From: Macrostomum lignano
Lineage: Eukaryota
DNA: 26,493 bases
Direction of reading: 5' to 3'
NCBI GenBank assembly: GCA_002269645.1
Contig: NIVC01005090.1
Coordinates: 1 to 26,493, forward strand
Below, one piece after another: positions 2,140 to 26,493 of the stretch. Position 1 is the stretch's first letter. Every line of letters starts with the position of its first letter. Made by a program: the position numbers and the translations under genes. The notes under the pieces are model-generated. The model was not told the origin of the DNA. It made no database searches and was given only the letters and a program-made list of their open reading frames with translations.

Positions 2140-2988
2140 CGGCTGTCAAGCGTGTATGTCCAGCAAATTTGTTTCTGCGTTGGCGGCGTCCGGAAATGGG
2201 AAAAGAAAGAAGCAGGCGATCGGGTATTGAGCTGAGATCCCTACGGTTAAAGTGCAAAAAAGCTTTCGGCTGACGGAACTCCGCGGTGCGCTTGTGCTGG
2301 TGAACGGAAGCCATCAACTCCGTGTATTTGAGCACCGGGGGCGAGCATGAGCTGACTACAGTCTGTCTATAGGGTTTGATTCGATCGCTACTTTTTGCAG
2401 GCCTTCAAACATATGAGCAGTGAACTATTTTGATTGAATTTGGTGCGAAAGGTAAATAAAATCTAGACAAATGACCTCAAGTGACCCTTAAGGATCAGTT
2501 AGGGGAGCGGCTTCTGGGCCGCTTGTCTCAAGCGCGCATTCACAGCAGTGCTTAATTATAATCTTAAAGAATATTGCGGCATGGCGCGAACTAAGTCAAT
2601 GATTGCAGAGGGAATGGGGCTGCAGGCTAACGAGCTCTGCCTCAAGCCCGCTATTCACAGCGGGCCTCTCAGCTGCTGCAGCAAAAGTAACACGCAGACT
2701 ATAAGGAATATCATAAGAATTAGCTTTGCTCGTACCGAGGTTGGGAAAACAATGAGTGTTGAGCAGAAATTAAAAACTCCACTTAAGCATAGAGATTAAA
2801 ATGGTGAGAGAGGTTTGCCCATTGCTGCGCTGTCTAGCTTGTCCCACAGTTTTCAGTTAAGTCACTTCAGCAGATTCGAATTCTCAGCTGCGTCCACTTT
2901 GTTCTCGGCTGTTGAGATATGCTGAAATTTGAAGTTTCGACTTAATTGTTTTTCTTTTTTTCAACAGCTTTTGGTCACGAAGGGAAAG

Positions 2989-3748
2989 GGAGCCCGCAGT
3001 TGGGGTGGCTGAGGGCAATTTCAGGGACAAGATTTAGAGCGCCTATGTACGCAGAAGGGAGCCAGCAGTTGGGGTGGGTGAGGGCAATCACAGGGACGAG
3101 ATTTAAGCCGCCAATGTACTCGGGGGAAGGAAGCCAGCAGTTGGGGTGGGTGAGGGCAATCACGGGGACGAGATTTAGACCGCCAATGTACACAGGAGAC
3201 GGGAACCAGCAGTTGGGGTGGGTGAGGGCAATCACAGGGACGAGATTTAGAGCGCCAATGTACGCGGAGGAAGGAAGCCAGCAGTTGGAGTGGGTGAGGG
3301 CAATCACAGGGACGAGATTTAAACCGCCAATGTACTCGGGGGAAGGAAGCCAGCAGTTGGGGTGGGTGAGGGAAATCACAGGGACGAGATTTAGAGCGCC
3401 AATGTACGCGGAGGAAGGAAGCCAGCAGTTGGAGTGAGTGAGGGCAATCACAGGGACGAGATTTAAACCGCCAATGTACTCGGGGGAAGGAAGCCAGCAG
3501 TTGGGGTGGGTGAGGGCAATCACGGGGACGAGATTTAGACCGCCAATGTACACAGGAGACGGGAACCAGCAGTTGGGGTGGGTTGAGGGCAATCACAGGG
3601 ACGAGATTTAGAGCGCCAATGTACGCGGAGGAAGGAAGCCAGCAGTTGGGGTGGGTGAGGGCAATCACAGGGACGAGATTTAAACCGCCAATGTACGCTC
3701 GTACTCGGGGGAAGGAAGCCAGCAGTTGGGGTGGCTGAGGGCAATCAC
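2989..3748 (+). repeat. 72-bp minisatellite, ~10.5 copies, three unit variants
   Basis: Unit GGAAGCCAGCAGTTGGGGTGGGTGAGGGCAATCACAGGGACGAGATTTAAACCGCCAATGTACTCGGGGGAA and variants, in the order A B C A B A B C A B plus a partial copy. Confidence 0.97.
3694..3703. mobile_element. Probable mariner excision footprint TA-CGCTCG-TA inside a minisatellite unit
   Basis: Three sister units read ATGTACTCGG. This unit reads ATGTACGCTCGTACTCGG, i.e. the TA is duplicated around CGCTCG. Confidence 0.75.
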
Positions 3749-3815: not shown

Positions 3816-6800
3816 TCACCTGACGTGATACATGGATGTCGGGGGCAGGAAGTTGGAGCAGCTCCGCAGCAGGCGGTTGTAGTTGTCCAGAATTATATTC
3901 TCCCGATGCAGGTTGATGTCAACTTGTGGATCAAACAGATGCGAGTTGCCGTGCTGCAGTTCCCGGAACTCCTCGTACTCGTACACATTCCAATAGGGCA
4001 CGCCGCAGTTCTTCATAAGCTCCTGGCCGCCACCGCCGCCCCCGCTGCTCGCAGGAACGCCGCATGGGTTGTTTGAAGTCTGCTGCGTCTTCGGAGTCGC
4101 TGACTCGGTCTGGGTGCTCAGCTGCAGGTTCGGTGGGGGGAGGCGGTGTTGCAGAGCAGCTAAGAGTATTGTGGAGTGTACTGATAAACAGTCCAAGTGT
4201 CTTGACTACACAGCCAGCAGTACTTTGAGCTGCCCAGTCTCATTCATCATCACTGAGAGACTCACCTGCGCGTTGCTGGCTGACCAGCAGCCGGGCAGCG
4301 GGTGGCGCTTGTTGGACTGGTTGCTGCAGGACAGCGGCACCAGCAAGGCCGACAGTGACAGCGGCTGCGCTGGCTGCTTCAGCTGACCGCGGCTGCCGCG
4401 GCTCCGCCTTGATTGGCTGCGGGCCGCAGCCCCTGTCAGGCGAGCGGCATTTTAGGGTGCGCGATTTTGAATTTGTGTCCATGAAAGAGTTGTGCGTACA
4501 TTTCTACTACGAGCGTATTAGTAGATAAACAAATATTTGCAGTAGGTTTTGAGCACCTCCTTGCACTGACTCCTGCTGACAAGGATAATTTACACAGGCA
4601 CGTACTTATTACACAGGCTTACTCAAGGTGTACAGCGGCTTTCTAATTGTCAGGCATGTTGTACTCTGCCTGTGTCTCGGGGGTTGGCCCGAATTTGCTG
4701 GAATCGCACGACAAACCTCGGCGGCCAACTTTTGTGCACACGTCCCAAATGAAGTTCAGGCAAGCAACACGGGAAAAGCATAAAGTAGTTGAGCCAAAAT
4801 TATTCTTATAAAAACCTAAGGTTGGCATGCAGACTTTCTGTGTCTTAAGCGCTGCTTCATGAGGAGGGAAAGCGAGTTGATGACGCGCGTCTTTTTTTGA
4901 CGAATGTACCTGTTTGAAAAGTTCGAGAATTCTATAACTTCCACGAGGTGGCCGCTTGTGAAGCTTCTGGTGAAGAAAGTCTGGAAGCCTCAGAACAGAC
5001 GATTCTAAAAATAAACATTTGACCCGATTATATTTTGGTTTCATCGTGTTTCTTGTCCCCTCTCTTCATTTCTCCGATTTTGCAGCACCCCAAGCGCAGA
5101 ATCGCTCTTCCTTACCTGAAGCAAACTCGACCCGCCTCCCGCCGCCGCCCCCGCCGGCGCCGTCAGTCCCAGCTGTGCGCTCCGAGCGCGCGGCAAAGTG
5201 CGAACTGCGCTGGTCCTTCTCACTGGCCGGCTGCGAGGTGAGATGTGAGGGGGGTGAGAGTGAGGGTTGCGATGTGAGGGGCGTGGGTGTAGGATGAGGT
5301 GCGCGGGGTGAGGGTTGCAGGGTGAGGGGTGAGAGAGGGCGGGGTGAGGGTGCGGTTGAGAGAGGGCGGGTGAGGGTGCGGAGTGAGGGGTGCGGGGAGG
5401 GGGCGGGGTGAGGAGTGAGGGGTGCAGAGTGAGGGGTGCGGAGTGAGGGGTGCAGAGTGAGGGGTGCGGAGTGAGGGGTGCAGAGTGAGGGGTGCAGAGT
5501 GAAGAGTGCGGAGTGAGGGGTGCGGCGTGAGGGGTGCAGAGTGAGAGGTGCAGAGTGAGGGGTGCGGCGTGAGGGGTGCAGAGTGAGAGGTGCAGAGTGA
5601 GGGGTGCGGAGTGAGGGGTGCGGATTGAGGGGTGCAGAGTGAGGGGTGCGGAGTGAGGGGTGCGGAGTGAGGGGTGCAGAGTGAGGGGTGCGGAGTGAGG
5701 GGTGCGGAGTGAGGGGTGCGGAGTGAGGGGTCCGGTTGCTACCCAACCTCCAGTTCCCGAGTCGCTACCCCAACCCCAATCTCCAAAGCCGCTAGCCCAA
5801 CCCCAATCTCCAAAGCCGCTAGCCCAACCCCAATCTCCAAAGCCGCTAGCCCAACCCCAATCTCCAAAGCCGCTAGCCCAACCCCAATCTTTAAATCCGC
5901 TAGCCCAACCCCAATCTCCAAAGCCGCTAGCCCAACCCCAATCTCCAAAGCCGCTAGCCCATCTCTCATCCTCCCAGAGTCGCACCAGCTGGCTGTCTCC
6001 GCAGTAGTCCTGCAGGTGGAGGTCCGTGGCGTTGCAGTTTCTCTGTACGCTCGGCCCGCTGAGGCAGAAGCGGGACTGGGAAGCCAGCGGACAGGCGAAG
6101 GCGGGCTGCATGTTGGGCTGCTGCTGACTGAGGAGCTTGCTGACTGCGGTGAGGAGATCGGCCTTTGGAGAGCAGGGCTTGCGGCTGAGACTGAAATAAT
6201 CTTAAAGACTTTTGAGGAATGAGACTCAGAGTATGAGGCATGAGAATCAGAGTGTGTGAGGCATCAGAATCAGAGTGTGAAGCATGAGAAGCAGAGAGTG
6301 TGAGGGATAAGAGAGTGTGAGGCATGAGAATCAGAGAGTGTGAGGCATGAGAATCGGAGAGTGTGAGGCATGAGAATCGGAGAGTGTGAGGCATGAGAAT
6401 CAGAGAGTGTGAGGGAAATGAGAGTGTGAGGCATGAGAATCAGAGAGTGTGAGGCATGAGAATCGGAGAGTGTGAGGCATGAGAATCGGAGAGTGTGAGG
6501 CATGAGAATCAGAGAGTATGAGGCATGAGAATCAGAGAGTATGAGGCATGAGAATCAGAAGCAGTTAAACATGAGAATCCGAGTTACAGATAGGCATGTA
6601 TGAGAATCGGAGAGTGAGACATGAGAACATCTGTGTTACAGATGAGACTGTGGGGCAGCGACTGAGATGTGAGCCAGTAAGGTGGTGCAAAAATCAATTA
6701 TAAAATACCGAATTTCGGCAAAAACAGCAGCGACGATGACTCACACACTTCAGATGCCGAATGCTGATCCTCAAAGTGAGCTCCCGCGGGCAAATTCTCA

Positions 6801-7042: not shown

Positions 7043-7136
7043 CCCACTGCCTTCGCCGGGAAAATCACAGAGGAAAATGCAAATCCAGTTTGAACGGGAG
7101 CCTTGAAATCTGACCGCCAGCAAATCGAATTTGGTT

Positions 7137-8215
7137 ACGGTTTAGGTTAGGATTTAGGTTAGGGTTTTCGGTTAGGACTTAGGTTTGTTTTTTTGGTTAC
7201 TTAGGTTTGGGTTTTAGGTTAGAATTTAGGATAGGTTTTAGGTTAGACTTATGTATGAATTTTAGGCTAGGATTTAGGTTAGGTTAGGATTATGGTTAGG
7301 ATATAGGTTAGGGTTTTAGGTTAGGATTTAGGTTAGCGTTTTAGGTTAGGATTTAGGTTAGGGTTTTTGGTTAGGATTTAGGTTAGCGTTTTAGGTTAGG
7401 ATTTAGGTTAGGGTTTTTGGTTAGGATTTAGGTTAGGGTTTTAGGTTAGGATTTAGGTTAGGGTTTTAGGTTAGGATTTAGGTTAGGGTTTTAGGTTAGG
7501 ATTTAGGTTAGGGTTTTAGGTTAGGATTTAGGTTAGGGTTTTTGGTTAGGATTTAGGTTAGGGTTTTTGGTTAGGATTTAGGTTAGGGTTTTTGGTTAGG
7601 ATTTAGGTTAGGGTTTTAGGTTAGGATTTAGCTTTGGGTTTTTGGTTAGGATTTAGGTTAGGCTTTTTGGTTAGGATTTAGGTTAGGGTTTAAGGTTAGG
7701 ATTTAGGTTAGGGTTTTTGGTTAGGATTTAGGTTAGGGTTTTAGGTTAGGATTTAGGTTAGGGTTTATGGTTAGGATTTAGGTTAGGGTTTTTGGTTAGG
7801 ATTTAGGTTAGGGTTTTTGGTTAGGATTTAGGTTAGGGTTTTAGGTTAGGATTTAGGTTAGGGTTTTAGGTTAGGATTTAGCTTTGGGTTTTTGGTTAGG
7901 ATTTAGGTTAGGCTTTTTGGTTAGGATTTAGGTTAGGGTTTAAGGTTAGGATTTAGGTTAGGGTTTTTGGTTAGGATTTAGGTTAGGGTTTTAGGTTAGG
8001 ATTTAGGTTAGGGTTTATGGTTAGGATTTAGGTTAGGGTTTTTGGTTAGGATTTAGGTTAGGGTTTTTGGTTAGGATTTAGGTTAGGGTTTTAGGTTAGG
8101 ATTTAGGTTAGGGTTTTAGGTTAGGATTTAGCTTTGGTTTTTTGGTTAGGATTTAGGTTAGGCTTTTTGGTTAGGATTTAGGTTAGGGTTTAAGGTTAGG
8201 ATTTAGGTTAGGGTT
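7137..8215 (+). repeat. Interstitial telomere-like satellite: 25-bp unit GGTTAGGATTTAGGTTAGGGTTTT(A/T) with a 250-bp higher-order repeat
   Basis: Diagnostic variants recur every 250 bp: GCTTTGG at 7631/7881/8131, TAAGG at 7691/7941/8191, GGGTTTATGG at 7761/8011. Confidence 0.97.
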
Positions 8216-8971
8216 TGAGTTGACAGTCAATGTGTGGCAGTCAAATGTCGCGGACCTGTCAGCTGAGACGAGAACACTCGCTATCAAAAAGTGCATCTGA
8301 CAGATTCTGTAACCCTGCTGTCAGCTCATATAGAAATTTGCATTTTACCTAAATTAAAGCTGACAGATGTGCAACTATGGACAGCTGAAGTGGAAGGATG
8401 CACTCTTGATTTTCTTCGAAAACTTCCGAAAACTCAAGCTGTACATTCAAAGCGGCCTACTAGAATTCTGCCAATATTTGCAAGTGTAACGTCCTGTGTT
8501 GTTAAGTAGTCCTTGGCCTGGAACACGCGTGAGTTCACAGGCGAAGTCCTGGCAATGACCAGCTGACAGCCAGTGGAGCTCGTCACGGGTCGCTTTTGAG
8601 CGCGCATGCAGAGGCCGGCACCCGATTGACATGCCGGCAAACAACTGGAAACAGAAGATCCAAGCCATTGCTCTGCAGGCCATGCAGCCGCAGCAGGCGC
8701 TCTGAGCACTGAGATGGAATTTTGTATTTTAAAGTCGTCCTTTAGTGCCCCCGTTCAGTCTTACAAATAAATGAGCAGTGTTGGGGATTACTTCATTGGT
8801 AAACTAAATACGTGTATGAGCATTTTGGTAGGCAGGTAAGCTAAGTGGGTGACTGCAAGCCCTACTGTCTGTAAAACTCAGCATTGCACGGACTGAGCTG
8901 GAGTTGGTTCAAGATGGGCGAGAAAGCTTCAGTCTCTCGAGGGCTTCAGCAAGCCCTGCAGGCAGCAGTCT

Positions 8972-12693: not shown

Positions 12694-15600
12694 TTAACCG
12701 AAGTAGCCGTCTTTAGTTGACTCGGCCTGTCGTTTCTCGTCCGACTGCGCGAGCTCGACACTGGCGCCAGCTTGTCCAAGACCGAGCTTGGCGCTAGATT
12801 CTTGCTTACTCGAGCGCTCTTTGCTGTCGCCGTCTTTAGTTGACTCGGCCTGTCGTTGCTCGTCCGACTGCGCGAGCTCGACACTGGCGCCAGCTTGTCC
12901 AAGACCGAGCTTGGCGCTAGATTCTTGCTTACTCGAGCGCTCTTTGCTGTCGCCGTCTTTAGTTGACTCGGCCTGTCGTTTCTCGTCCGACTGCGCGAGC
13001 TCGACACTGGCGCCAGCTTGTCCAAGACCGAGCTTGGCGCTAGATTCTTGCTTACTCGAGCGCTCTTTGCTGTCGCCGTCTTTAGTTGACTCGGCCTGTC
13101 GTTTCTCGTCCGACTGCGCGAGCTCGACACTGGCGCCAGCTTGTCCAAGACCGAGCTTGGCGCTAGATTCTTGCTTACTCGAGCGCTCTTTGCTGTCGCC
13201 GTCTTTAGTTGACTCGGCCTGTCGTTTCTCGTCCGACTGCGCGAGCTCGACACTGGTGCCAGCTTGTTCGAATTGGAGTCCTGCGCTTACGCATTTTCTT
13301 TCAGTTTTATTGTGATTTGGGTTTTTGTGTGTAGTTTGATTTTCTGTTTTAAAGGCAAAACTGGTTTTTGATTCGTCCTTAGATAGGTGTATTCCTTGTC
13401 TTGAGGTGGACTTTCTTTTTGTTAGAGCTCCTTCTTTGGTTTCTTTTTCCTTTTTGTATATCCCGATTTGCTTGGTTTGTTCGCCTCCGCCGGCCTCGAC
13501 TTCGTATTGTCCGTGGCCTAGGGTTAACGCAACTTCTTGTTCATTGGTTCTTGCTGCTATTTTATGTTTTCCCTTTTTTACTTTGGCTTCCGTTCCTATG
13601 GATCCGTGCGTGATGCCTAATTGAGTGTCGTTGCGTTGTACCGATAAACTGAAGTCATCATCTGTTGTTTTAACTTTTAGCTGATCCTGCTTTTTTTTAA
13701 TCTGATGCCATCTCCAGACAACTCCACTTTGGTGTCCTTTGATGCGTTAGGCTTCCTCGGTTTTTTTCCTTGCTGTGTGTATTTTTTTGGCATGGAGGAA
13801 TGATTCATATTGTTTTGCTTATTAGCAGTTGATAATGTTTTCGAGAGAGTTCTCTTGGCTTGATCTACGGCTTGGCTTGTCATGTCTCCTATGCTCTTTC
13901 TTAAATAATCCTCTAGTATAGCACTGACTACTTCGCTGGTTTGCGACCGCATTTGCTGCCCGACTTTGCTTGTCAGTTGGCTGAGTTGCTCCACATTTTT
14001 CATATTCTTTTCCTTTAGCTTGAGATTAGGGTCGTACTTGATTTCCCAATCGTCGCTTCCGTCAATTAAAAAACAATCTATATTTTTTACAATGCTGCCA
14101 ACGACAGTTCTCAAGTTCTCAGCCTGCACTCCGATGGCTGCAGCATCCACCGCTACGGCTGCCAGCCTGAGGAAAACTAGGAGCCCTTTAAAGTGTTCTG
14201 CTAATTCAGAGTTTAAATTGCTCAGATATGACTTTATTGTATCCATGACCTTTTCCATCGCTTCTGCATCGTTCAGAACTTTGTGTGCTGCCTCTTCCGT
14301 GGCTTCTTTAAGTGCCTTCAATACATTGATTTGCAGTTCCGGAGTAAGCATGGAGAAATCTAATACATTCATTTTTTCCGTCGCTTGATTTTTCTGCACG
14401 CACATGGGAGCTGCTATTCGAACAACAATGTCGTACAGCCTTCCTCGCTGGGCTTCTTCGTTGCACTTTCCCTCGATATCAATTTCAACATTCTTCTTTA
14501 ACTTAGAAATTAAACTGTCAATGAGCCGTCTTTGAGCATCAGTTACAGCAAAGTCTGCTAAAAACTTAAACACGGGATTGTCTACTATACCTTTGAGCAC
14601 TTTTACAGTATTTTCTCCAACCAACTTTGTGACCAAAGATCCAGCTTTGGAATAATGTTTACTTCCAACTGAACTCATATTTTTCGCCACCGCTCCGAAC
14701 TTTGTCGATGATTTTAAGTACCCAATAACTTTACTAAAGCCGAAAGTAAGTAGGGATAAGCCAATGTTTAGAGCCTTGCTTTTCAACCAAGACGTAGAAT
14801 CAAATTCTCCTTTAAGTAAACCCATGGTACCGGCCAATATGTCACTGAAGCCTTCAAAGACTAAGTTTACACCACCAAAAGAAAACATGCAGCCAATGGC
14901 GATCTCGATTAAACCTAAAATTATTACCGCGATCGCGAATCGATACTGGGGTTTTTTCATCACACTGAATAGCCTCACGTGACCCAATAAGTAGAGAGAC
15001 CTCAGCTCATCAAGTGTAATTCTGTCTGGGTCTTTCTCGATGTCCTTTATACAAGTGCTAATAGCGACGATTTGGCCATCTTTTAATTCTTCAAGTTTTT
15101 TTAACTTTGTTCGATTCCAGCTTTGTACTTTAGGATAATATCAATCCTAGTAGTACATTGGCCGGATAGTGCACTTTTATCAGACTTTTTATCCAATTTG
15201 AATGCTTGATCGGATGTAACCTCTTGATCAGCCTGATCCACTTGATCTGTTTGATCGGATGTAACCTCTTGATCAGCTTGATCCACTTGATCTGTTTGAT
15301 CCGATGTAACCTCTTGATCAGCTTGATCCACTTGATCAGCTTGATCCACTTGATCTGTTTCATCCGCTTTTAATCTTGCTCCAGAAAAAAACCGAGTCCA
15401 CAAGGAGTGGGCTAGCCACGTTTCCTTAATTCTTGTTTTGGCTTCCTGCAAGTCGTTTTTGACATCTTCAATGCCGCTATCACCTTTCATTATCTTCGCA
15501 TACGCTCTATTGTAGTAGGCTATTGAAGACCAGGCGCAATTCATTGCAATAGCTTTAGTATATAAATCAATTGCTTTTTGGAAATCCTCATGTCGTAAAT

Positions 15601-18600
15601 ATTTGTCCGCAAGTTTTAGAGTTTGAAACGGACTCATTAAACAATCTGATTCAATATTTTTTGTGGCGTCCTTGAAAGTTTCCTTGACTTCTCTAACATA
15701 CTTGTCTGTGTTTGGTTTGCTGAAGTCGGCAGTGTGGCACAAAATTGTCTTTAGATGCATTCCCCAGATTTCTTTCAGACAGTTCAATTTGAGCTTTAGG
15801 TCTATATCATCCTTATTTGCCTGGCGGTACTTCGTTAATGAGCGACTGAAGCGACGAAACAGGCTTTCCTCGAATTCTACTTCAGGCATAGAAAATTCCG
15901 TATGATTTCGCAGCTCTTGTAAACTGGCCTCCTGCCTCACTTGCTTCATCTCCTCTACCGAGTCGCAGTCAGCAAAACAAGCGCTAAGACCCTCCTGGCT
16001 TAGAATCAATGTTGCAGAACCCCGCTGACCCTTGCGTCCACTGCGACCACACACTTGCTCCTCGACTCGCTGATTCAAGGGGAGAAATGTGACAAGTACG
16101 TGCAGACCTCCAGCTGCCTCTGCTTCATCGTTTACTTTCACGTCCGTGCCTCTGCCTGCCAAATTCGTGGCCACAATCACATCTCCTGGACCAACAATCA
16201 GCTCAGACTTTGTATCTTCGTTCCTGATGTACCTTTTAGGCGTAACCCCGTGACATCGGCGAGTTACCTCGTTGAGAACGAGATCAGCACTGTTTATGTC
16301 CTCACAAACAATCAGAGTTGGCCGGTGCCTTTCCTTCTTTACTAGCTGGCAAAGCTTTGAGATGCACTCAGATTTGGTTTCGGTGACAATGCCCGGGTTC
16401 TCTACTAGCCGGCGTTCCCTGAACGGAGGAATATAGTTTAGCTGTACTTTGTAGGTTTTGCGCATGAACTCCTTCTCGTGCTCCTCCCCGAGAGTCCCAG
16501 AAACGCCGAACACCGCGGTGCCATACCGACGGAAAAAAGATAAATTTGATAAAAAGTTTGTCTCTAAACCAAGAGGTCTCATTTGTAGACGATGCTTCAG
16601 CTGCAGGAACTGCTGCAGTCCATCGCTCCATCTCATGTTTTCTTGAACCACACCTGTGTGCTTGAAGTCCACAGGCACAGCATCTCCGTCCTGCAAGAGG
16701 TAGTCGCGTCCAGGCTGCAGAACTCCTGCGGTGAGAGCACTGTTGATCCAGACGTCAAGCATATCGTCGATGAACCCTTTCAGGTGTTTTGGCATCGGCA
16801 GTTGCTTTTCCTTGCTAGTTACTTCCGTTTTAGAGTCGTCAGTTGAATCCTTTAAGGATGTGCTGTAATTAATTTGGGATTGAACATCCTCTCTTTTTTT
16901 CGAAATGAAGTCCTCAATATTGGCGAACAGCAATCTGCAGACACCGCCTTGGTTCACGAGAAGATGCGTGGAACAGTCTTCTGAATGCTCCAGTGGTTCT
17001 ATTTCCGCATTTCTGTAGGTGTAGATGTTGCACTGGGAAACTGGAGCAAGGAATCTGCGGCAGTGGTTAGAATTTCTCTTACTCTGCCGATATCGAATTG
17101 AGATAAATCAACGGGATCTACAGTCTGATTCAAGAAGTCCTTCTTTTCCTCTGAGTTTATCAGTTCTTTCTGAAGTAGCGTTTCAATTAACTCATTGAAT
17201 TCCTCATCGGACGTTAGTTCTTTAAGGAAGTAGAGAAATGTCATTGCCTGCTCTGCAGCCATTTCACCTCCATGCACGGTGTTTAGAACATGACAACCGA
17301 ATGTGGCTCTGAAAATCGTCGGAAAAACTGGGTCCAGCATTTTCATGTCTCCCACATCCTGAGAAAGATACGTTAGCTGCACTCCCTGGTCGAGCAGCAG
17401 TGAATCGACCTCATCCACAATAACTGCGTCGAAGCTTCTTGTGCCACGAATTTCCTTAAACTGGAACTCGTGCCGCAAAACGTCACCTGCAAATGAAGAC
17501 ACCGTGCCATACACTATTTTGGACTCATAACACTCTTTTGGTTTTTTATGATTAATGTTGCAGCTAACGGTAACTTTGCATTCTTTATAAAAATCATGCC
17601 ATTCTTGGCAGTCTCTTTCAGCCAGAACTTCAGAGGGTGCAACGACGTCAACTGACGTCCTCCCGAGAAGCAGAAGTCCGACGGCGGTCATTGCCACAAT
17701 GCACGATTTTCCTTCGCCAGTCAGAATCTGCAAAATTTGTCCGAATTTCTTGCTAGCAGAGCTTTTGAGCAAGGCAGCAGCACTGAGAAGCTGTGTGTTC
17801 CTCGGAAGATATCCTTTACATTTTCTCACTGCCTTTGACAGATCAATCAAAATTTTGTGCAATGGTGGTTCCTTTCCACGCTCCCATAGTTTGATTTTGC
17901 TAAGCTTTTCGGCGATAGTTTTTTTGCTTTGCCAAATCCGGACAAATCAAAATATTTCGCGGTTTTACTGACGACATCTTCAAGCTTGAAAAGCTGATCC
18001 TCTTCAAATCCTCCTGATTCCTTAAGTTCAGCTAGAAGTTCGCCGAGAGTCCTCTGTGCTGCCTGATCCTTTTCAAGTCGCTCAATGGTGGCCTTTGAAA
18101 TAGTCTCGCTGGAATCCAGAAGACCTTTTAAATCGCAGCGGCTCAAAATCATCATCTGGACGACCTGTCTTACTTGATCAGGTGTCGAGTCACTAGAGTG
18201 AATGAGCTCCATTAGCTTGAGCGTGCTTGCAGAATCCCAGTGCTGCATTGACAGAATGAGCTCAACCACACATTCGGTGTCCGATTTCTTATCCAGATAG
18301 TCAGCGATGCCAGCAGTTTTCAGCATTGCTGTCACGACGGATCGAAGTCTCTTCAAGTCGGTGTCTGCTTTCTGGACAGGCCAGAGTCGAGTAATATCTT
18401 CAGCCACTAAGAGTAGCTTCAGCAGAATTTTTATGACAGGATTAGTCTCATCCTGATTGTTTGCCATTAGCAGCTTATCCAGATGTTGTATGGCACAATT
18501 TGTGTCACGGAACTGATGAAGAAGTTCATCCAACTCGTCTTCGTTCAAAAGGTCTTCAGCGGATTTTTCTTTAAAAAAAAGCAAAACCAGCAAGCCATAA

Positions 18601-20161
18601 TACACCATGTCGATTTCTGTTTTCGGAAAGCAAAATTCTATGAGAACCTTGTTTGCAGCGTCTAGCACTTGGCCAGCCGACTCTTCATCTAGAAGCTTAA
18701 GAAGCGACAAGTGTGTCGCCATTTGATTCTCTTTATTGGGCTGAGGAATTCGTGACTTCCAATGACTACGAAAATGATTCAGGAATTGCGATCTTGAAAC
18801 GGCTTCTACAGTTCTCAAAGCATTTTGACCACTCGCATTCTGACTTGCTTCTTTGAGACGGGTAAAAACATCTCCGACAGCATATTCAATGCTTTTATCT
18901 ATTTGGCTCCTGATATCTGCAACAGTAGCATCGGAAACTCCAAGGCTTGCATAGTCTTTTGCACACTTGCCGCGCACATGCTGTATCGAGACTCTCAAGC
19001 CTTTGAACAATCTCTGCATTTCTTTTGCTCTATGGTTTTCCCTTGCTGTTGCCACTTGCCGTCCAAATTTCTCTGTTTTCTGTAGGTTCTCAGACGCTTG
19101 CTGATTTCTCCTTATCTTTGCTCGCTGCTCTTCAATTCTTCTGGCGATATCGGCCTCCTTTCAGCTAGTTCAGCTTCGAACTCTCTTCTTCCTTTTTCAA
19201 GCTCCTCCTGCTGCGACTGCAGTCTCTTCTTCATCTCCAAGCTATGCTCTTCCATCTCAATCTGCTTCTTCTGCATCTCGCTCTGAAAGCGACCTTTCCT
19301 TTCTTTAAACTGCGCTTGCAGACGAGCTCTGTGTTGATCAGCTTCCGCATTGAGGCTGTTAAACCTTGCACTTGTCTCTGACGTAATCCGCTCCTTTTGG
19401 TGCCGAAAGCTTTCCAGTCTTTCCATTCGAATCTTTTCCACCTCTTTTTTTTCCTCCAGAAAATCCTGTTGGCCTTTAGTTTTCCAGTCTGTCTTTTGCT
19501 TCTGCAGTTGAGAGAAAAGCTTTTCTCGATTCTTATTCTGCTGGGAAGAACTCTCAGCCTGCCTGCCTAACCTGTCTTTTTGCATCTCCTGGCACCTTCT
19601 TTTGAACTTATCTTCTCTGCGGCTGAATGCGTTTAATGCCCTGCTTCTTTCTGAATTCCACGCCTCCCATTTTTTTCTGTTTTCTTCTAGGATCCTATCC
19701 TGCTGATCCTTCTGCTCTTTTATCTTTCTTTCGTCAAAGAGTGTCCGTTCTCTGTCACTCTGCTTCAGCTGCTCTCGAGCTGTTTGCATTCTTTGCTCCC
19801 GCTCTCTGCGTTTCCTGTCAGCAAACATAGACTTCGTTTCATATTTATATTCTGCCTCCTGTTTGCCGTCATAGCTCAGATGAATAAATCCCTCTGCCGG
19901 TGAATCCAGCTTCCATTCTTTGTTTCTGATCCCATTGCACCAAGACTGCATGTTTGGGTTTTGAATGGTCTCGTGTTTACCGTGCATTCCGTGTTTGAAG
20001 TAAATGTTAACCGGTAGACCTTCGTAGTCATAATGAACTGATCTACCAGATGGCAAATTGATGAGCTCGGATCCAGCACCAACTCCTATCACCTTGTACT
20101 TCGCTGCCACGCTCCAGTCCTCTTCTGTGTCGTTACAGAGCTTGCTCCCGGTGTTGCCCAT
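12694..20161 (-). CDS. Giant eukaryotic SecA-like DEAD ATPase (~2490 aa after repairing five 1-nt homopolymer deletions). Parts: myristoylation motif, coiled coil, SecA NBD1/NBD2, TPR, hydrophobic hairpin, C-terminal repeats
   Basis: SecA-family motifs appear in order: QILTGEGKS (Walker A), APSEVLAERD, YGTVSSFAGDVLR, VIVDEVDSLLLD (Walker B), WSDGLQQFLQLKH, GVSGTLG, IVATNLAGRGTD, GGLHVL...EEQVCGRSGRKGQRGS. Frames join at ~19155, 17919-25, 17035-37, 15106-08 and 13691-98. Stop TAA at 12696-12694. Confidence 0.85.
12707..13264 (-). repeat. 123-bp coding tandem repeat (41 aa, QAGASVELAQSDEKRQAESTKDGDSKERSSKQESSAKLGLG), ~4.5 copies
   Basis: Units start at 12707, 12830, 12953, 13076 and 13199 and are nearly identical. 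They are in frame with the repaired SecA-like C-terminus. Confidence 0.93.
15206..15360 (-). repeat. 45-bp coding repeat (DQTDQVDQADQEVTS) built from 9-bp DQx subunits
   Basis: About 3 copies, seen in both DNA and translation, between the TPR and the hydrophobic segment. Confidence 0.9.
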
Positions 20162-21245: not shown

Positions 21246-24200
21246 ATGAACGACGACAGGCACGACTTAAAGCACCATTTTCGCTTTCTAGTCAAAAACA
21301 AAAGATCCACAAGGCAGAATGGAAGCCTGGAAAGTGTGCTCGTCTTTGATTTGGAAGGACCTCCTTCTTTTTCGTCCAGTAGATGGACAGAAGCGAGCAA
21401 GAAGCAAAAGACAAACCACGCGGAAGTCGAAAAATGGTTTGTCAAGTTTAGGAGGAGCCATGAGGAGGTAAGACCACTTTTGAAGAGATTTTGATTTACA
21501 TCATTTTCAAATTCAAGGTGCCGCCTGTACTTTAGGTCAAAAGCTCACTGTAATCAGCAAGCTCACTAGATGCAGAACAATAATTTTAGTCAATTATTTT
21601 TCTGAAATCTATAGCACACATACATACAGACAACTCATTTTTTGTATATAGGATCCTGTGATGCCAGTCGGCTTATTCATACCTTTCCTTAAAGCTTGAG
21701 GCTAGAGGCTAGCTAGCCTAGATGCATAAGGCTTGTATTGTACGAGCGTACTTTACTCTCTCGTGTTGCACTGGCGCAATTGGTGGTGGTTCGCGTTGCA
21801 AATCGTCCTGAACAAGTGCAAGCAGTGTATAGCAGGCTCCTAGCTGCAGGCCGGTCCAAGGACAGCGGGGGAGGCAAGAGTCGCTCATTCCTCATCTTAT
21901 TAATGAAAAAACGAATTATCTTCCATTTTTTCTCCATTAAGGTTCCAAGTGAATTTTCAAACAAAACTACTGAGGAACAGTTAGGTGCGACTCAAGTGCA
22001 ATACGGTGGCCAGACATGCTTTTTGGTCTATTGTCTACACACGTCATTCCTCTCTTCCCGGGAAATAGGAGTTTATGCGCCATTTTTTAGTTCTCGGCTC
22101 ACGGTGCGCCGTTGCAAATGAAGAGTCCTTAGCTATCCATACTAGAAAGTATCTGTACCAAGAATATGTTTTCGTTCCCTGCCATCTTCCACCTTCACCA
22201 AAATAGACATGAGATCGCGCTAGATGGCTTGAGTAACCAAATACTGAGATGCGATTCTATCATTCTCAAACCGCTGTGAGCGGACAATAAGTTAGTTTGG
22301 GACTACTTCGAACAGTGAGCAGTTTTCTCTTTGCTTGCGATTCTCCTGATCGCCCTGTGTGCTGCAATTCCGCCGAGCGTTTCAACTTGCATTGTTTTAT
22401 AGAACGGGCGCTCTATAGCTCCCAGTATATGATAAGATGACGCGGTTGTGTTCAATCAAAATTCGTCAATGCAGACCTTGAGTTCTTTGTGTTTTTTACT
22501 CCCCATACCCACTCGCTCCAGATCAGATCTACACGTGGGATGTAGAAGAAGGGTGTTTGATTTGCGTTTTAGTTTGTAAACAGTGAGTTCGTGCTGCATT
22601 TAACCGTCTCTCTATACCCTTGTAGATTAATGTGTAGTGCGTATGCTGTGTCATCTCAATTCAGAATCGTCCTATTTCCTTTGCTACTCCTTTCAGAGGA
22701 AGGAACAATGGAGCTGCAATGTCGAAGTAAATAAAAAAAGAAGAGAAGTGTCTTTGGCAGTATTAGGCATGACAATCTCGGATAATATCAAAATTAGTTC
22801 GACAAAGATCACGGTGGCCGACTGCAAGCAGGAATTTAACCGATTGGTCTTGGAGTCCACAAAGGGAATTAATATCTCATCTAGATGCATGCGAGGGTCC
22901 AAAATAAAACTTCTTTCTTCAGAAGTTGTGGTGGCAGAAAGCTCAGTTGTTCAGTGCTCGCAGTTGCTATGCGAATCAACGATCCGGGAGGTGTCATCCA
23001 GCCTGATTGTGTTTGGCAGCATCTTGCCGCTTCCCTGTTCAACTGAGGAAGCTGATGGCAGCCTTTCCATTCGAGTTAATGGAAATATTGTAGTAAAAAT
23101 GGATGCAAAAATCGGATATTCGGACCGGCATAAAAAGGCCAAAGAAGTAAGTTTGATCAGTACTGATGGCATAACAAATGTTGGAGTCGTATTTGCTGAA
23201 CACAAGATAGAAATCTCGGCAAAGCAGATTCGCTCTCCAGTATCGAGCAAGGAGTCTGCAGCTCGTGTGTCAAGATACCTCAGTGACGCTGGCAAGCAAA
23301 GCAAGGCTGAAAGGAAAGCGAGAGACGCCGACAAGCAACTGATCGATTCGTCCACAGGTGATTCTGCAGCAGTGAAAAAGCTGCTATTTTCTGGGGCTGA
23401 TCCTACATTCAAAGACAAAAAAGGTGAAAGCGCCATTGCGAAGCTCAGAAAGGCGATTGCTGATCTGGGAACTGCGCCGAATCCACCGGGTGTCGCTGAA
23501 AAGAATAAACTCAATAGGAACGCGATACTCCTGAAGTGGGAGGCAAAAAGTAAGGGAAAATACCAGTCACAGAGTATCTGCTGTCTTGTTAGTGAGGATG
23601 TTGCCAACCTCAGCCAGTTTCTGGGTGCAAAAGTTCATCTTGAAATTGGTGGGGATGCGTTTGTCGAAGAAAGGTCTGTATGGAAAAGTGGGTCAATCAG
23701 CGGTTGGTGCCGCGGTAGGCTCAATGTCCAAGGAGAAGTCAAGATAGAAGAGCTGAATAAATTCGAGGTTGGAAAATGCAGAGTCCAAGCAGGGGCAGAA
23801 TTGTGGTTAGTGAATGGCGGTTCATTAAGAGTAGTAGGTAGTCTTGAAAACATTGGATGCATATACAACAGCTTCAAGAAGTTCTCAATGGATATTGAAA
23901 GTTTCTCACAGAGTATAAATGCGGCTGCTTATTCTGAGAAGGAGAACAAAGCTGAGCTTCAAATTACCACAAGGAGACCAAGTGAGTCCGTGTTTGGCAG
24001 GCTGGGTGGCTACCGAGTCACTGTCTGCGCATTTGCTCAGCTTGCGCTTCAGGCTGAAGTTGAGGCCATGGAGTCTTTGGTAGGTGTCATTTATAGTCCA
24101 GCTGGTCATATTTCGCTGCAAGGAAGTATTAAAATAATTGAAGGACCACTTGTTGTACATTCCTGGCTTCGAACCTGTGGCTTTGGACCTGACGTAGAGT

Positions 24201-26481
24201 TAAACTGCAGCATGGAGTGCGCGGGCATTGTCATTCCTGCTGCAACAGTGAACTTTGGTCCTAAGAGCCAGTTGCTGTGTCCTCCACAGTGTAGTCAAGA
24301 ATATTGCGCGAATAGCATCGAAATCGTGTTAAACAAAGCTCAAACACAAAGCGGATCAGTATGGGAGTTTTTTACTCGCGAATTGAGCATCTTCATCGGG
24401 ACTAAATTCACTCACCAAGGCAGCCTGAAGCTTTGCAAGAAAGGTGAAACAGGTCGTGAGACAAGAGAAGAGCATGGAGCGTCTGTATACATAAGGGGAA
24501 ACCGATTTGTTAACAAAGGAATGATAAGTGGAATGAAGGCCTTATGCATTGATTTAGACAGTGATTGTGAGCTAGACAGAAACCTTGAAGTACATGACTC
24601 CATTTCAGTTTTGACAAGAAAGCATCTTACAATATCGTCGAATACTAAATTGAAGTCCGCTAACGGAAGCTTGGTGATCAGTGCACATTTCATAGCTAAT
24701 TTTGGTGCTGTTCACAGCCACACGGATTTAATCATCGAGTCCGGAGACATTGATAATTCAGCTGGGAGCATTGCATCAGACCATGGAATCGTCTTTATTG
24801 CCTGGTTAGGGCCACAGGAAAGCTGCTACCTCGAGGGCCATGTACAAGCTGGTTCGCAGCTCGTGCACAGCAGTAAATTCTAATATGCTGCATATCCACG
24901 CCAAATCTCACAGCCAGCCATTGCAACTGCAAATTCCAATGAACGGCGCCAGCTTCCAATGCTTGTCAGGGTCCGTAGCACTTCATTCAAAAGTGTGCTC
25001 GCCTGAGCAAACTTTTCTTCACTTAAGAGCTTCTGAATCAATTGAACTGCAGCGAAGCGTCACTTGCGACACACTCCTCGTTCAGCCGTCCCCGTCTGCT
25101 TCGGAGATAAAGCTGACTGTGTCGAAACTGGAGAAAATAACGGTGGGCTGTTTGTTAATCAGCCACGTAAACGACCGGCAGAACCGAAATGCTAAAGCAA
25201 TTGTAATTGAAGGTCAGCAAGGGTCAAAATTAAAATGCAACAAATTTATGGGGTCTGAAATCAGTCTTGAGCTGAAAATGGCCGCTGAAATGGATATGCC
25301 AAGCCAGATTATGGTGCAGAAGCTGTCGATTTCACAGGACTTGACCGTTCAAAGCCAGCAAAGCGTGTGCGGAGAATTTCTGGTAAACTGTGAGACTGAA
25401 CTGGAGATTAGTGGCAATGCGGAGTTCGTTGGGGCAAGCAGCTGCCTTGTGAGAGCTCGTAGACTTTTACTCTGTGATGCGGCCGTTCTTCGCCTCTTGC
25501 GTCTGAGACACGTGACAATTCTGGCAAAGGAAGTCGTGACTGAAGGCAGTTTTTTTCGCTTCTTTGGAAGATGAAGACCGTGCCGCGATAGTGGTACACG
25601 CGGATGAATTTTATTGTCGTGGATTGATTCAGTTCGGAGGTGAAAGCTCGACAAATCTCATTTTGCATGTCAACGAATGCACAATAAGCGGTCGCATCGT
25701 TCACGGCAATCAGCCATCGCTGATGCTGATCGAATTCTTCAAAACTGCCACGGTTCTGCCGGAGAGCGAAATTGATTTAGGGAAACTTCTGCTAATTGGG
25801 GGATGCGAAGGTACATGCAATTTTAAGTCTGCAACCCTTTCAGTGTCTGAGTTAATGGCTATAAAATCTGTGCGCCGGTTGTCCTGGGAGACCAGCAAAG
25901 TCAAGCTGAACCAGGCACGCTTCATTGTAAAAAACGTTGAGCAGGTCGCTCTTAAAAAAACTGAAATCATTTGCCCTCAGGGCGTTGTACTCGACGAATC
26001 GCTAGTGGGAAGCTATGAAGTGAGCACTGCTAAAGTAAAAATCTGTGCTCAGGAGTTCACCCTGGAAACTGGTTCCGAGATTCGCAACATTGATACACTT
26101 GAAATTCACGCCTGGAAAAACGCCAGTTTTGAACTAGGCAGCAAAGTACAATTTTGCGGTAACTTTAATCTAAGAAGCAGATTCATTTACTTTCAGGCGT
26201 CCGTACACGATACGGGTGGCATTGATTGTCAAGCGGAAAGTATTGTTGTGACCGGGAGGGTGGATTGCTTTAGATCGCTGTCCGTTGCTGCATCTCAGCT
26301 GCTGCACAATCAGGGAACGTTGAGTGCAAAAGATGTCAGACTCGATGCTACCGCTCAGATGCACATGTGCTCGAGCAGCGAGGATTCAGTTCTACCAGCG
26401 ATAATTTCAGCAAAAAGCTCATTGCAGCTGAACTGCTACATCATGTTGTCTATATATGCCGAATACACAGCCCCACAATAG
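21246..26481 (+). CDS. Filamentous-haemagglutinin/CdiA-like beta-helix repeat protein with an ankyrin-like insert. Exons 21246-21467 and 22697-26481, two frameshifts, ~1334 aa, may continue beyond the window
   Basis: Phase-0 donor GAG|GTAAGA (21468) matches phase-0 acceptor CCTTTCAG|AGG (22696). Repeated motifs: ITNVGVVFAEHKIEISAKQI, FVNKGMISG, IANFGAVHSHTDLIIESGDIDNSAGSIAS, LHNQGTLSAKDVRLDA. Ankyrin-like DSAAVKKLLFSGADPTFKDKKGESAI. Frames join at the AAA near 24874-76 and the T7 at 25550-56. Confidence 0.7.
21741..21750. mobile_element. Probable mariner excision footprint TACGAGCGTA (intronic)
   Basis: Exact match to the recurring 10-mer, inside predicted intron 21468-22696. Confidence 0.6.
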
Positions 26482-26493
26482 CAGTCAAGAACA

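Follow-up and report, generated by a model that had tools for sequence, protein, structure and literature searches.

A probable giant eukaryotic gene for an FHA/CdiA-derived beta-helix protein with an ankyrin insert in Macrostomum lignano

Introduction

Beta-helix filaments of the FHA/CdiA type count as a hallmark of type V (two-partner) secretion in bacteria. The TpsA exoproteins concerned (e.g. CdiA, FhaB, HecA and EtpA; Pfam PF05860 with PF05594/PF13332) are giants of 3,000–4,000 amino acids (aa) that are predicted to form rods of about 20-residue coils, carry motifs of the x-L-x-N-x-G-x-I type and end in a variable C-terminal region, whilst the passengers of autotransporters (e.g. Pet, Ag43, Hbp, EspP and IgA1 protease) also form long parallel beta-helix rods. 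In a survey of polymorphic toxins, FHA repeats were found only in toxins delivered by type V secretion systems (T5SS; PMC3482391). Here we describe a locus on contig NIVC01005090.1 of the Macrostomum lignano assembly GCA_002269645.1 (positions 1 to 26,493, forward strand; this whole stretch of 26,493 nt is referred to below as the window), for which a first-pass annotation made from the sequence alone had proposed a spliced eukaryotic gene encoding an FHA-like beta-solenoid. Our analysis indicates that the region from 21246 (with a candidate first exon) or 22697 (without it) to 26493 is probably the 5' third of a giant eukaryotic nuclear gene for an FHA/CdiA-derived beta-helix rod with an ankyrin insert.

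A search of a paper library for eukaryotic FHA repeats returned bacterial work only, with no description of a eukaryotic family of such type, and the small family to which this gene belongs (clam, octocoral and others) is apparently undescribed. A parallel from another class of scaffold is offered by the teneurins, metazoan receptors that derive from bacterial RHS/YD-repeat polymorphic toxins taken up by horizontal transfer (PMC5851990, PMC13018210). In both cases a bacterial toxin-presentation scaffold resides in animals, joined to eukaryotic modules; this likeness concerns origin by analogy and not homology. Teneurins go back to RHS/YD shells and are type II membrane proteins that are conserved across Metazoa, whereas the family described here goes back to the FHA (T5SS) type, lacks a membrane anchor and is rare, with a patchy distribution.

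A rare family of giant proteins

A long open reading on the + strand starts at 22631 and reaches the end of the window, and it is rich in Ser, Leu, Val and Ile with 3.5% Cys, much as the first-pass annotation had described (Ser/Val/Ile/Cys-rich). We searched 1.84 billion representative proteins exhaustively with HMMER (phmmer) and obtained 12 matches, five of which were ordinary ankyrin-repeat proteins aligned only at query residues about 204–336. The remaining seven were true homologues (E 4e-22 to 6e-5), comprising P0121 (3,952 aa; E 4e-22), P0122 of the clam Tegillarca granosa (KAJ8305344; E 7e-18), P0123 with its cluster mate P0139 (3,040 and 4,193 aa, respectively), P0124 (1,233 aa, from a Logan contig), P0126, P0127 of the octocoral Paramuricea clavata (CAB4033201) and P0128. 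P0121 and P0123 are encoded by uninterrupted open reading frames (ORFs) on contigs of 1.6–1.9 Mb.

The long members of this giant beta-helix family (3,000–4,200 aa) share a layout of an N block (about residues 1–800), a variable region (about 800–1150), a central block (about 1150–2580 in P0121) and lineage-specific C-termini. The window portion of the gene, about 1,265 to 1,340 codons and represented here by a conceptual protein of 1,260 aa, constitutes its 5' third and reaches the start of the central block. Since the frame is open to the last base and the homologues go on for 1,800–2,900 residues, the gene runs past the window, as had been suspected at first reading. Landmarks shared across the family occur in a fixed order, namely C.V.V, G(D/N)L..GTDGKIG, GNITNFG, an insert with LL.SGADP, an LLKAW helix, GDI.DCSQL and VEE.S.W.SG.ISG, followed by beta-strand sequence. 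The N-block alignments contain 11 invariant columns; the window protein is colinear with the N block and stays so from the C.V.V motif through three frame changes (described below) to its last codon. At one landmark it reads EDVANLSQF where the family has GDIxDCSQL, so that the conserved Cys is lost.

The ends of the proteins differ between lineages. The C-terminus of P0121 consists of roughly 1,300 residues of helical repeats, and database searches with the C-terminal helical region P0133 returned nothing meaningful. P0123 and P0139 (L002) end in long arrays of a 24-aa unit (GGTGKEGKHASFxAKSGDQEIAMA), the copy number of which differs greatly between these two proteins, although they are about 94% identical elsewhere. 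In P0124, residues 1–300 gave a match to an OTU-like cysteine protease at 22.4 bits, just below the Pfam cut-off of 23.3, and the N-terminus a faint match to a PHD-like zinc finger (12.2 bits; cut-off 29.1); the ORF that contains both is uninterrupted and also encodes the beta-helix block.

Represented by seven of 1.84 billion proteins, the family is rare and patchy, and its lineages, which share about 25% identity, diverge fast. A word-indexed search of 5.8 billion proteins yielded no homologue, whether queried with the 748-aa ORF or with an eight-sequence alignment containing database members; low-complexity beta-strand words probably swamp the candidate list in searches of this kind. A single-protein query found no relatives in the JGI metagenomes or IMG/VR, NCBIfam gave no match on three homologues, and P0121 had no match among PDB sequences. 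The Tegillarca protein KAJ8305344 is annotated as a 715-aa hypothetical protein that ends at an in-frame TAA (position 23285 of locus L006). In this locus (T. granosa CM056598.1), homology to P0121 extends over 21377–33287, running about 10 kb past the TAA with three frame changes, as far as the retrieved sequence goes. The public Tegillarca model thus represents a truncated piece of what is either a giant gene or a pseudogene. Because this model stops at 715 aa though homology continues for at least 10 kb, members of the family escape standard annotation.

Predicted beta-solenoid and ankyrin insert

The repeat pattern (I.N.G.I and similar) that had first been noted over more than 1,000 residues stood only as a sparse motif. 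The conceptual protein contains the pattern [IVL].N.G.[IVL] five times, where shuffled sequences would lead one to expect 0.2 (z about 10; 25-fold), and an x-N-x-G-x motif also pervades genuine CdiA proteins as a consensus. Hydrophobicity alternates with a period of 2, as in beta-strands; there was no period of about 20 residues, and BLAST detected no significant internal repeats in the window protein.

Single-sequence AlphaFold prediction was unusable (pLDDT 34), whilst AlphaFold (AF2) with an eight-sequence alignment gave a beta-solenoid at pLDDT 81.8 and pTM 0.75. This model is all-beta at aa 49–179 and 288–728, with long strands every about 20 residues, and places helices at aa 205–218, 223–231, 246–258 and 266–284. 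A Foldseek comparison with the PDB, which like the AlphaFold model had been proposed as a check in the first-pass annotation, was headed by the TpsA protein EtpA (8vbb), with Pet, Ag43, IgA1 protease, Hbp, EspP, Hap and the HMW1 secretion domain also at the top of the list, none of them at a significant level (values are given in the Discussion). The encoded part is thus predicted to form a rod of the right-handed beta-solenoid type with about 20-residue coils. Autotransporter passengers resemble this model as long parallel beta-helix rods and are among the best structural matches, non-significant as these are; unlike them, the window protein has no sequence similarity to the passengers, no C-terminal beta-barrel translocator and no signal peptide.

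Between the two all-beta regions lies a helical insert (aa 181–288; about 23237..23560, + strand) composed of a basic low-confidence linker, four helices with one clear ankyrin-type repeat, and a conserved LLKW helix. The ankyrin-type repeat itself spans about 23342–23464 (+ strand) and includes the stretch DSAAVKKLLFSGADP..GESAIAKL at 23360–23458, preceded by the basic segment KQSKAERKARDADKQ. Among PDB sequences, a family profile recovered designed ankyrins (E 1.2e-11) and natural ankyrin-1/2 (E 2e-3 to 4e-3), with matches that cover profile positions 200–277, whilst the window sequence alone reached designed ankyrins at E 0.03. Over the insert, the Foldseek comparison returned the ankyrin repeats of cpSRP43 with probability 1.0 and a root-mean-square deviation of 1.8 Å over 58 columns, as well as DARPins. 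The insert therefore combines helix-turn-helix pairs, the LL..GA(D/N) signature and a profile match, bearing out the initial description of an ankyrin-like repeat and a basic segment that interrupt the solenoid. Compared with ordinary ankyrin-repeat proteins, with which it shares LL.SGADP, helix-turn-helix pairs and both profile and structure matches, it amounts to about one to two repeats placed as an excursion in a beta-helix and not to a free-standing stack. The ankyrin-like insert is a conserved feature of the family, and in the model the module is predicted to project from the rod about 180 residues after the start of the giant exon.

Frame changes and the integrity of the window copy

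The open reading is distributed over four overlapping segments of the + strand, at 22631–24880 (frame 2), 24810–25571 (frame 0), 25540–26478 (frame 1) and 26274–26492 (frame 0, open up to the window's last base). Passing from one to the next involves three frame changes in 3.8 kb, each at a homopolymer. The first segment of the giant exon (22697..24876, frame 2) encodes the family N block with beta-helix and insert, as indicated by homology and the AF2 model, and tblastn aligns homologues over 23033–24874. Frame change 1 (frame 2 to frame 0) falls at an AAA run with one surplus base (24875..24877), within the overlap of the open segments at 24810–24880; when one A is dropped the reading becomes ...QLVHSSNSNMLHIH...LQIPMNGASFQC, which corresponds residue for residue to ...YSNSERELFF...FIPPNQLEVEC of the homologues. 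The second segment (24878..25555, frame 0, open), in which the family's variable region begins, is colinear across this change with P0121, P0123, P0126 and P0127. Frame change 2 (frame 0 to frame 1) was assigned to a T7 run with one surplus base (25550..25556), the sole homopolymer within the 32-nt overlap at 25540–25571, and dropping one T gives ...EGSFFASLEDEDR; this placement is inferred, because the homologues vary in the region. The third segment (25557..26474, frame 1) holds the rest of the variable region and the start of the central block, and a hidden Markov model (HMM) of the homologues' mid-region matches frame 1 (25540–26478) colinearly at 23.6 bits (E 8e-9 for a target set of 10 sequences).

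Frame change 3 (frame 1 to frame 0) lies at a CCCC run that is one base short (26471..26474). Adding one C yields SSLQLNCYIMLSIYAEYTAPTIAVKN, aligning with KELIVEGLLCIIVGSQLQGTNINIKS of the homologues; the restored frame reads ...AEYTAPTIAVKN, colinear with the homologues, and the restored reading ...LQLNCYIMLSIYAEYTAPTIAVKN aligns with their ...LIVEGLLCIIVGSQLQGTNINIKS to the last codon of the window. The reading then stays open in frame 0 over 26475..26493, where the gene is cut by the end of the window. A shift at this CCCC run had been anticipated by the first-pass annotation, which mentioned no other; the changes at A3 (24875–77) and T7 (25550–56) add two more. Short introns were rejected as an explanation of the frame changes. 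GT..AG introns of a fitting length class were sought at all three junctions, and none had convincing signals, i.e. a good donor together with a polypyrimidine tract and acceptor. Given these poor signals and the unbroken alignment across the junctions, the changes are single-nucleotide insertions or deletions (indels) and not introns.

Because all three changes fall in homopolymers and the reading contains no in-frame nonsense codon, they are most simply explained as indel errors of assembly, for which a young pseudogene is the main rival. According to the latter explanation the window copy is decaying, its frameshifts arose by genuine slippage mutation and a full-length protein is not produced. 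The number of frame changes (three in 3.8 kb), the loss of the conserved Cys in EDVANLSQF and the Tegillarca copy, which also has an in-frame TAA and three frame changes, are all in keeping with decay, as are the minisatellites and telomere-like arrays that adjoin the locus, a type of region that gathers gene-family remnants. However, every change in the window copy is a single base in a homopolymer, after each of them 226–750 codons remain open, and homology is kept across every junction. Moreover, the unrelated SecA-like neighbouring gene has five frame changes at a similar density, likewise with no nonsense codon, which looks like an indel pattern that runs through the assembly. We therefore regard a pseudogene as possible but doubtful.

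Relationship to bacterial FHA/CdiA proteins

The link to FHA proteins is found in the central block of the homologues. There, the Pfam family PF13332 (Fil_haemagg_2) was matched at 25.6 bits in P0123, 22.2 in P0139 and 19.9 in P0121 (cut-off 22), and it was the only Pfam family matched in these three proteins. An hhalign comparison of the family central block with a bacterial CdiA/FHA alignment, each side comprising three sequences, gave a probability of 93.1%, E 3.3e-7 and 33% identity over 151 columns, and the match fell on residues 2031–2198 of E. coli CdiA, in the FHA-2 region. Bacterial controls were drawn from a plasmid collection and consisted of E. coli cdiA and the hemagglutinin-repeat proteins of Pantoea and Moraxella, all with a signal peptide; the E. 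coli CdiA control matched PF13332 at 196 bits over four stretches, best at residues 2375–2548. Since the central block of the homologues is homologous to the FHA-2/Fil_haemagg_2 region of CdiA/FhaB, the family would descend from a bacterial two-partner-secretion exoprotein of CdiA/FhaB type acquired by horizontal transfer, and we infer the same origin for the window gene, which very probably continues into an FHA-2-like central block. The FHA likeness initially ascribed to the window residues thus holds for the central block of their homologues (PF13332; hhalign 93%), whilst the window residues themselves gave neither a Pfam match nor more than 2% with hhalign.

Convergence would offer a different account, in which the beta-solenoid is a eukaryotic invention and its FHA likeness reflects the low complexity of beta-helix sequence. 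Similarity of the N block to bacterial FHA proteins could not be detected, the Pfam scores lie barely over the cut-off and the hhalign alignments hold three sequences each, all of which would suit convergence. So would several empty searches with the central block: its HMM gave no signal above shuffled controls against three bacterial CdiA/FHA proteins and tblastn found no match in 72,556 plasmids. A central-block profile likewise had no match among PDB sequences. Nevertheless, the hhalign alignment (93%, E 3e-7, 33% identity over 151 columns) follows a non-trivial pattern, AGRDI..AS.VT..G....AGRD..L....Y....KK..F, and is specific to the FHA-2 part of CdiA, whereas the N block, which is of similar composition and serves as a negative control, scores 2%. 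In addition, two lineages of the family that are about 27–31% identical both match PF13332, their sole Pfam match. Convergence is accordingly improbable, and we retain descent from a CdiA/FhaB-type protein as the preferred account.

The secretion apparatus of such proteins was not recovered with the beta-helix gene. The TPS (two-partner secretion) domain PF05860 was absent from the window ORFs (E ≤1) and from eight homologues, against 171 bits in the E. coli CdiA control, and the weak N-block hhalign alignment to CdiA/FHA lies outside the TPS region. A ShlB/FhaC gene stands directly upstream of the E. coli and Pantoea control genes, with none listed upstream of the Moraxella gene. No TpsB gene adjoins the beta-helix gene: its only neighbour in the window is the SecA-like gene, which runs on the opposite strand, none of the other ORFs matched Pfam, and no large genes were called beside the homologues in loci L001, L002 or L006. 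PT-VENN and toxin families were not detected in the homologues, the C-termini of which are helical repeats (P0121/P0133) or 24-aa repeats (P0123/P0139). Because signal peptide (see below), TPS domain, TpsB partner and PT-VENN/toxin tip are all missing, the family may be described as FHA-derived but not TpsA; the polymorphic toxins that the first-pass annotation had mentioned for the C-termini of TpsA proteins have no counterpart detected in the homologues. In turn, the family has gained the ankyrin insert, a small N-terminal domain, an OTU-like match (in one member and below cut-off) and variable C-terminal helical or 24-aa arrays. Compared with bacterial TpsA proteins, its members therefore share giant size, a predicted rod of about 20-residue coils, the N.G-type motif, a homologous central block (in the homologues), a variable C-terminal region and EtpA as top structural neighbour. 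They differ in having a nuclear gene with a spliceosomal intron, an ankyrin module within the helix and an N-terminal domain on its own exon, and in lacking a Sec signal peptide, TPS domain, adjacent TpsB/FhaC, PT-VENN and a recognizable toxin/immunity pair; they are presumably cytoplasmic.

Gene plan and the N-terminus

The gene plan of the family comprises a short first exon encoding a small conserved domain, one phase-0 intron and a single giant exon. In locus L001, a 78-aa exon (MPSKIEIH...RARNNDQ/GTAAGC, the slash marking the splice junction) is followed by a 6.7-kb phase-0 intron with the acceptor ttattgacag/GTTGTTATG and then by an 11.9-kb uninterrupted ORF. The Tegillarca gene (L006) has a 79-aa exon 1 (...ITNKK/GTATGT), an 11-kb phase-0 intron and the acceptor tctgttgtag/GATGTT, whilst the giant exon of L002 opens at a canonical acceptor, ttccttcctttgtag/AGAAAG, with no ATG.

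In the window, the candidate exon 1 (21246..21467, + strand) has 74 codons (MNDDRHDL...RRSHEE), an ATG with A at -3 and the donor GAG/GTAAGA at 21467/21468. It is the only sizeable option of an ATG ORF plus donor in the window that is compatible with the downstream acceptor, and its size fits the 78–79 aa of the homologues' exon 1. The candidate intron (21468..22696, + strand) is a phase-0 intron of 1,229 nt with canonical signals (GTAAGA...tcctatttcctttgctactcctttcag), and the acceptor tcctatttcctttgctactcctttcag/AGG (ctcctttcag/AGG) at 22696/22697 is strong and in phase 0 with the donor. Nonetheless, pairwise comparison of candidate exon 1 with four family N-termini stayed at shuffle level (z ≤0.7), against z 14 for the L001–Tegillarca control, and a search for the family exon-1 domain in six frames across the whole window did not find it. 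The window acceptor lies 6 codons before the conserved Cys, against 18–19 codons in the homologues, i.e. 12 codons downstream of the conserved intron position. Of the junction originally proposed between 21467 and 22697, the arithmetic, the canonical signals and the presence of a phase-0 intron in the family thus stand, whilst exon 1 has no support from homology and the acceptor is displaced from the conserved intron position. Alternatives include a phase-1 acceptor at 22664/22665 and a start at ATG 22643 inside the open frame, which keeps a YFLCYSF strand like IQFQCLV and IILECQV of the homologues.

Neither start model contains a hydrophobic N-terminus or a transmembrane stretch (top 19-aa Kyte-Doolittle mean 1.3, exon 1 being a candidate), and the first exons of the homologues begin MPSKIEIHVTCQ (L001) and MASNIRVTVEF (Tegillarca), with no hydrophobic leader, in agreement with the original observation that no signal peptide is obvious. 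If a signal sequence were instead carried by an unrecognized exon, the protein would be exported as an extracellular adhesin or toxin-bearing filament. The candidate status of exon 1 in the window leaves room for such an exon, the bacterial relatives are all surface proteins, and C-termini that vary between lineages recall polymorphic toxins. Against export, the conserved first exons of L001 and Tegillarca start with M and have no leader, one member may have cytoplasmic or nuclear N-terminal domains (OTU-like just below cut-off, PHD-like faint), Cys accounts for 3.5% of residues and shows no conserved pairing, and the homologues yielded neither PT-VENN nor a toxin domain. Export is quite improbable in our view, and a cytoplasmic protein is preferred.

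Genomic setting and the neighbouring gene

The window has about 45% GC, many minisatellites and gene-poor flanks, and Rfam and tRNA scans of it found none. GC at third codon positions (GC3) is 0.465 in the beta-helix gene and 0.456 in the neighbouring gene, with a codon-usage correlation of r = 0.78; since composition and codon usage match those of its neighbour, the beta-helix gene is a resident and not a contaminant. Homologues reside on contigs of 1.6–51 Mb, including the 51-Mb Tegillarca chromosome, and have introns. Together with the minisatellite-rich DNA and a neighbour from a mainly animal family, these findings agree with the eukaryotic locus originally proposed. Misassembly of symbiont or contaminant bacterial DNA into a eukaryotic contig, for which one might cite that the protein type is otherwise bacterial and that the SecA-like neighbour family also has relatives in intracellular bacteria (PMC3482391), is effectively refuted by the missing TPS domain, signal peptide and TpsB gene, the matching composition and codon usage, the minisatellite-rich, gene-poor flanks and the homologues on 1.6–51 Mb contigs with spliceosomal introns of 6.7–11 kb, one on a named clam chromosome.

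The neighbouring gene is a giant SecA-like gene (12697–20161, - strand; SecA_DEAD, SecA P-loop, SecA_PP_bind and Helicase_C) arranged head-to-head with the beta-helix gene. It begins MGNTGSK at 20161, a myristoylation-like signal, and its relatives occur in fishes, Ptychodera, Daphnia, rotifers and Mytilus ('SecA-like' proteins) at 30–43% identity. Its five frame changes are all in one direction and include no nonsense codon, at a density similar to that of the beta-helix gene; one of them would be explained by a candidate 50-nt intron at 17033–17082 (- strand; GTAAGA...CTAAC...TTTCCCAG), which corresponds to a gap relative to the Ptychodera homologue. Two tandem repeats lie within its coding region, one of 123 bp x 4.6 with copies 99% identical (12706–13267) and one of 45-bp/9-bp repeats (15206–15369). 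No SecA-like sequence was present beside the homologues within the available flanks of L001, L002 and L006, and the contig of the best SecA-like match carried that gene alone.

The remainder of the window is largely repetitive. A telomere-like array with a 25-bp unit (ATTTAGGTTAGGGTTTTAGGTTAGG; TTAGG(G)-like) in 43.6 copies occupies 7129–8216 and a GTTAGG-type array 2012–2137, whilst minisatellites occur at 14–499 (18 bp x 27), 2982–3748 (72 bp x 10.6), 5245–5735, 5763–5987 and 6213–6559. The setting may be subtelomeric or heterochromatic.

Discussion

A number of results weigh against reading the window as the 5' third of a giant FHA-derived gene. Pfam and NCBIfam gave no match on the window ORFs, so that the haemagglutinin and ankyrin families expected of a Pfam check did not appear, and hhalign of the family N block against three bacterial CdiA/FHA proteins yielded 2% probability. 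The FHA link is indirect, because it rests on a block of the homologues beyond the end of the window and assumes that the window gene continues in like manner. Foldseek against the PDB gave no match at E 0.001 (best E 0.11, range 0.1–4; TM about 0.2), low TM values being expected because a long rod is aligned globally. Candidate exon 1 has no similarity to the exon-1 domain of the family (HMM E 18), and because it has no support from homology the N-terminus and the absence of a signal peptide are putative for the window copy. Disrupted copies exist, as seen from the three frameshifts in 3.8 kb here and the in-frame TAA and frame changes in Tegillarca. Examination of C-terminal regions, which covered P0133 and all of P0124, revealed neither a catalytic nor a toxin domain, and a function in scaffolding or immunity is a suggestion. 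Set against these points are the colinear family alignment, the predicted fold, the conserved insert and the central-block match, and we consider a giant beta-helix gene the probable explanation.

The rod should remain in the cytoplasm, because it has no signal peptide and OTU/PHD-like modules are possible in one member. In a parallel beta-helix, one coil of roughly 20 residues adds about 0.48 nm. On this basis, a rod of about 25 nm would be expected from the approximately 1,000 residues of solenoid encoded in the window, whilst the longest members, with solenoids of about 2,000 residues, would reach roughly 50 nm. We propose that the protein would not leave the cytoplasm, where, as a rigid rod measuring tens of nanometres, it may serve as a spacer or scaffold. 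Other proteins could bind laterally at the conserved ankyrin module, and the termini that vary between lineages could provide cargo or effector ends, or interaction surfaces. Conflict or immunity is a possible setting. A role in host–microbe or intragenomic conflict would be compatible with the rarity and patchiness of the family, its fast divergence, its disrupted copies and its bacterial ancestry.

A bolder scenario, which we put forward as a long shot, is that a few marine invertebrate lineages domesticated a contact-dependent toxin-delivery filament of the CdiA/FhaB type as a cytoplasmic giant, paired at this locus with the head-to-head gene for a SecA-like motor (about 1–2.5 kb between starts). 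Such a pair would be an intracellular eukaryotic analogue of the bacterial filament-plus-translocase, used for immunity or in conflict with symbionts or pathogens.

Proteins of the FHA/CdiA kind are already known; what would be new here is an FHA/CdiA-derived beta-helix protein that is eukaryotic, spliced and non-secreted and has an ankyrin insert. If expressed, it would be the second instance of an animal adopting a bacterial toxin-presentation scaffold, the RHS-derived teneurins being the first, and a possible counterpart to them; in this instance the scaffold would have lost its secretion machinery and gained ankyrin modules and possibly OTU ones. The family would then provide a test case for how a beta-helix of 3,000–4,000 residues folds without a TpsB pore, for the intracellular use of a rigid rod with a length of roughly 50 nm or more, and for the link between acquisitions of this kind and invertebrate innate immunity.

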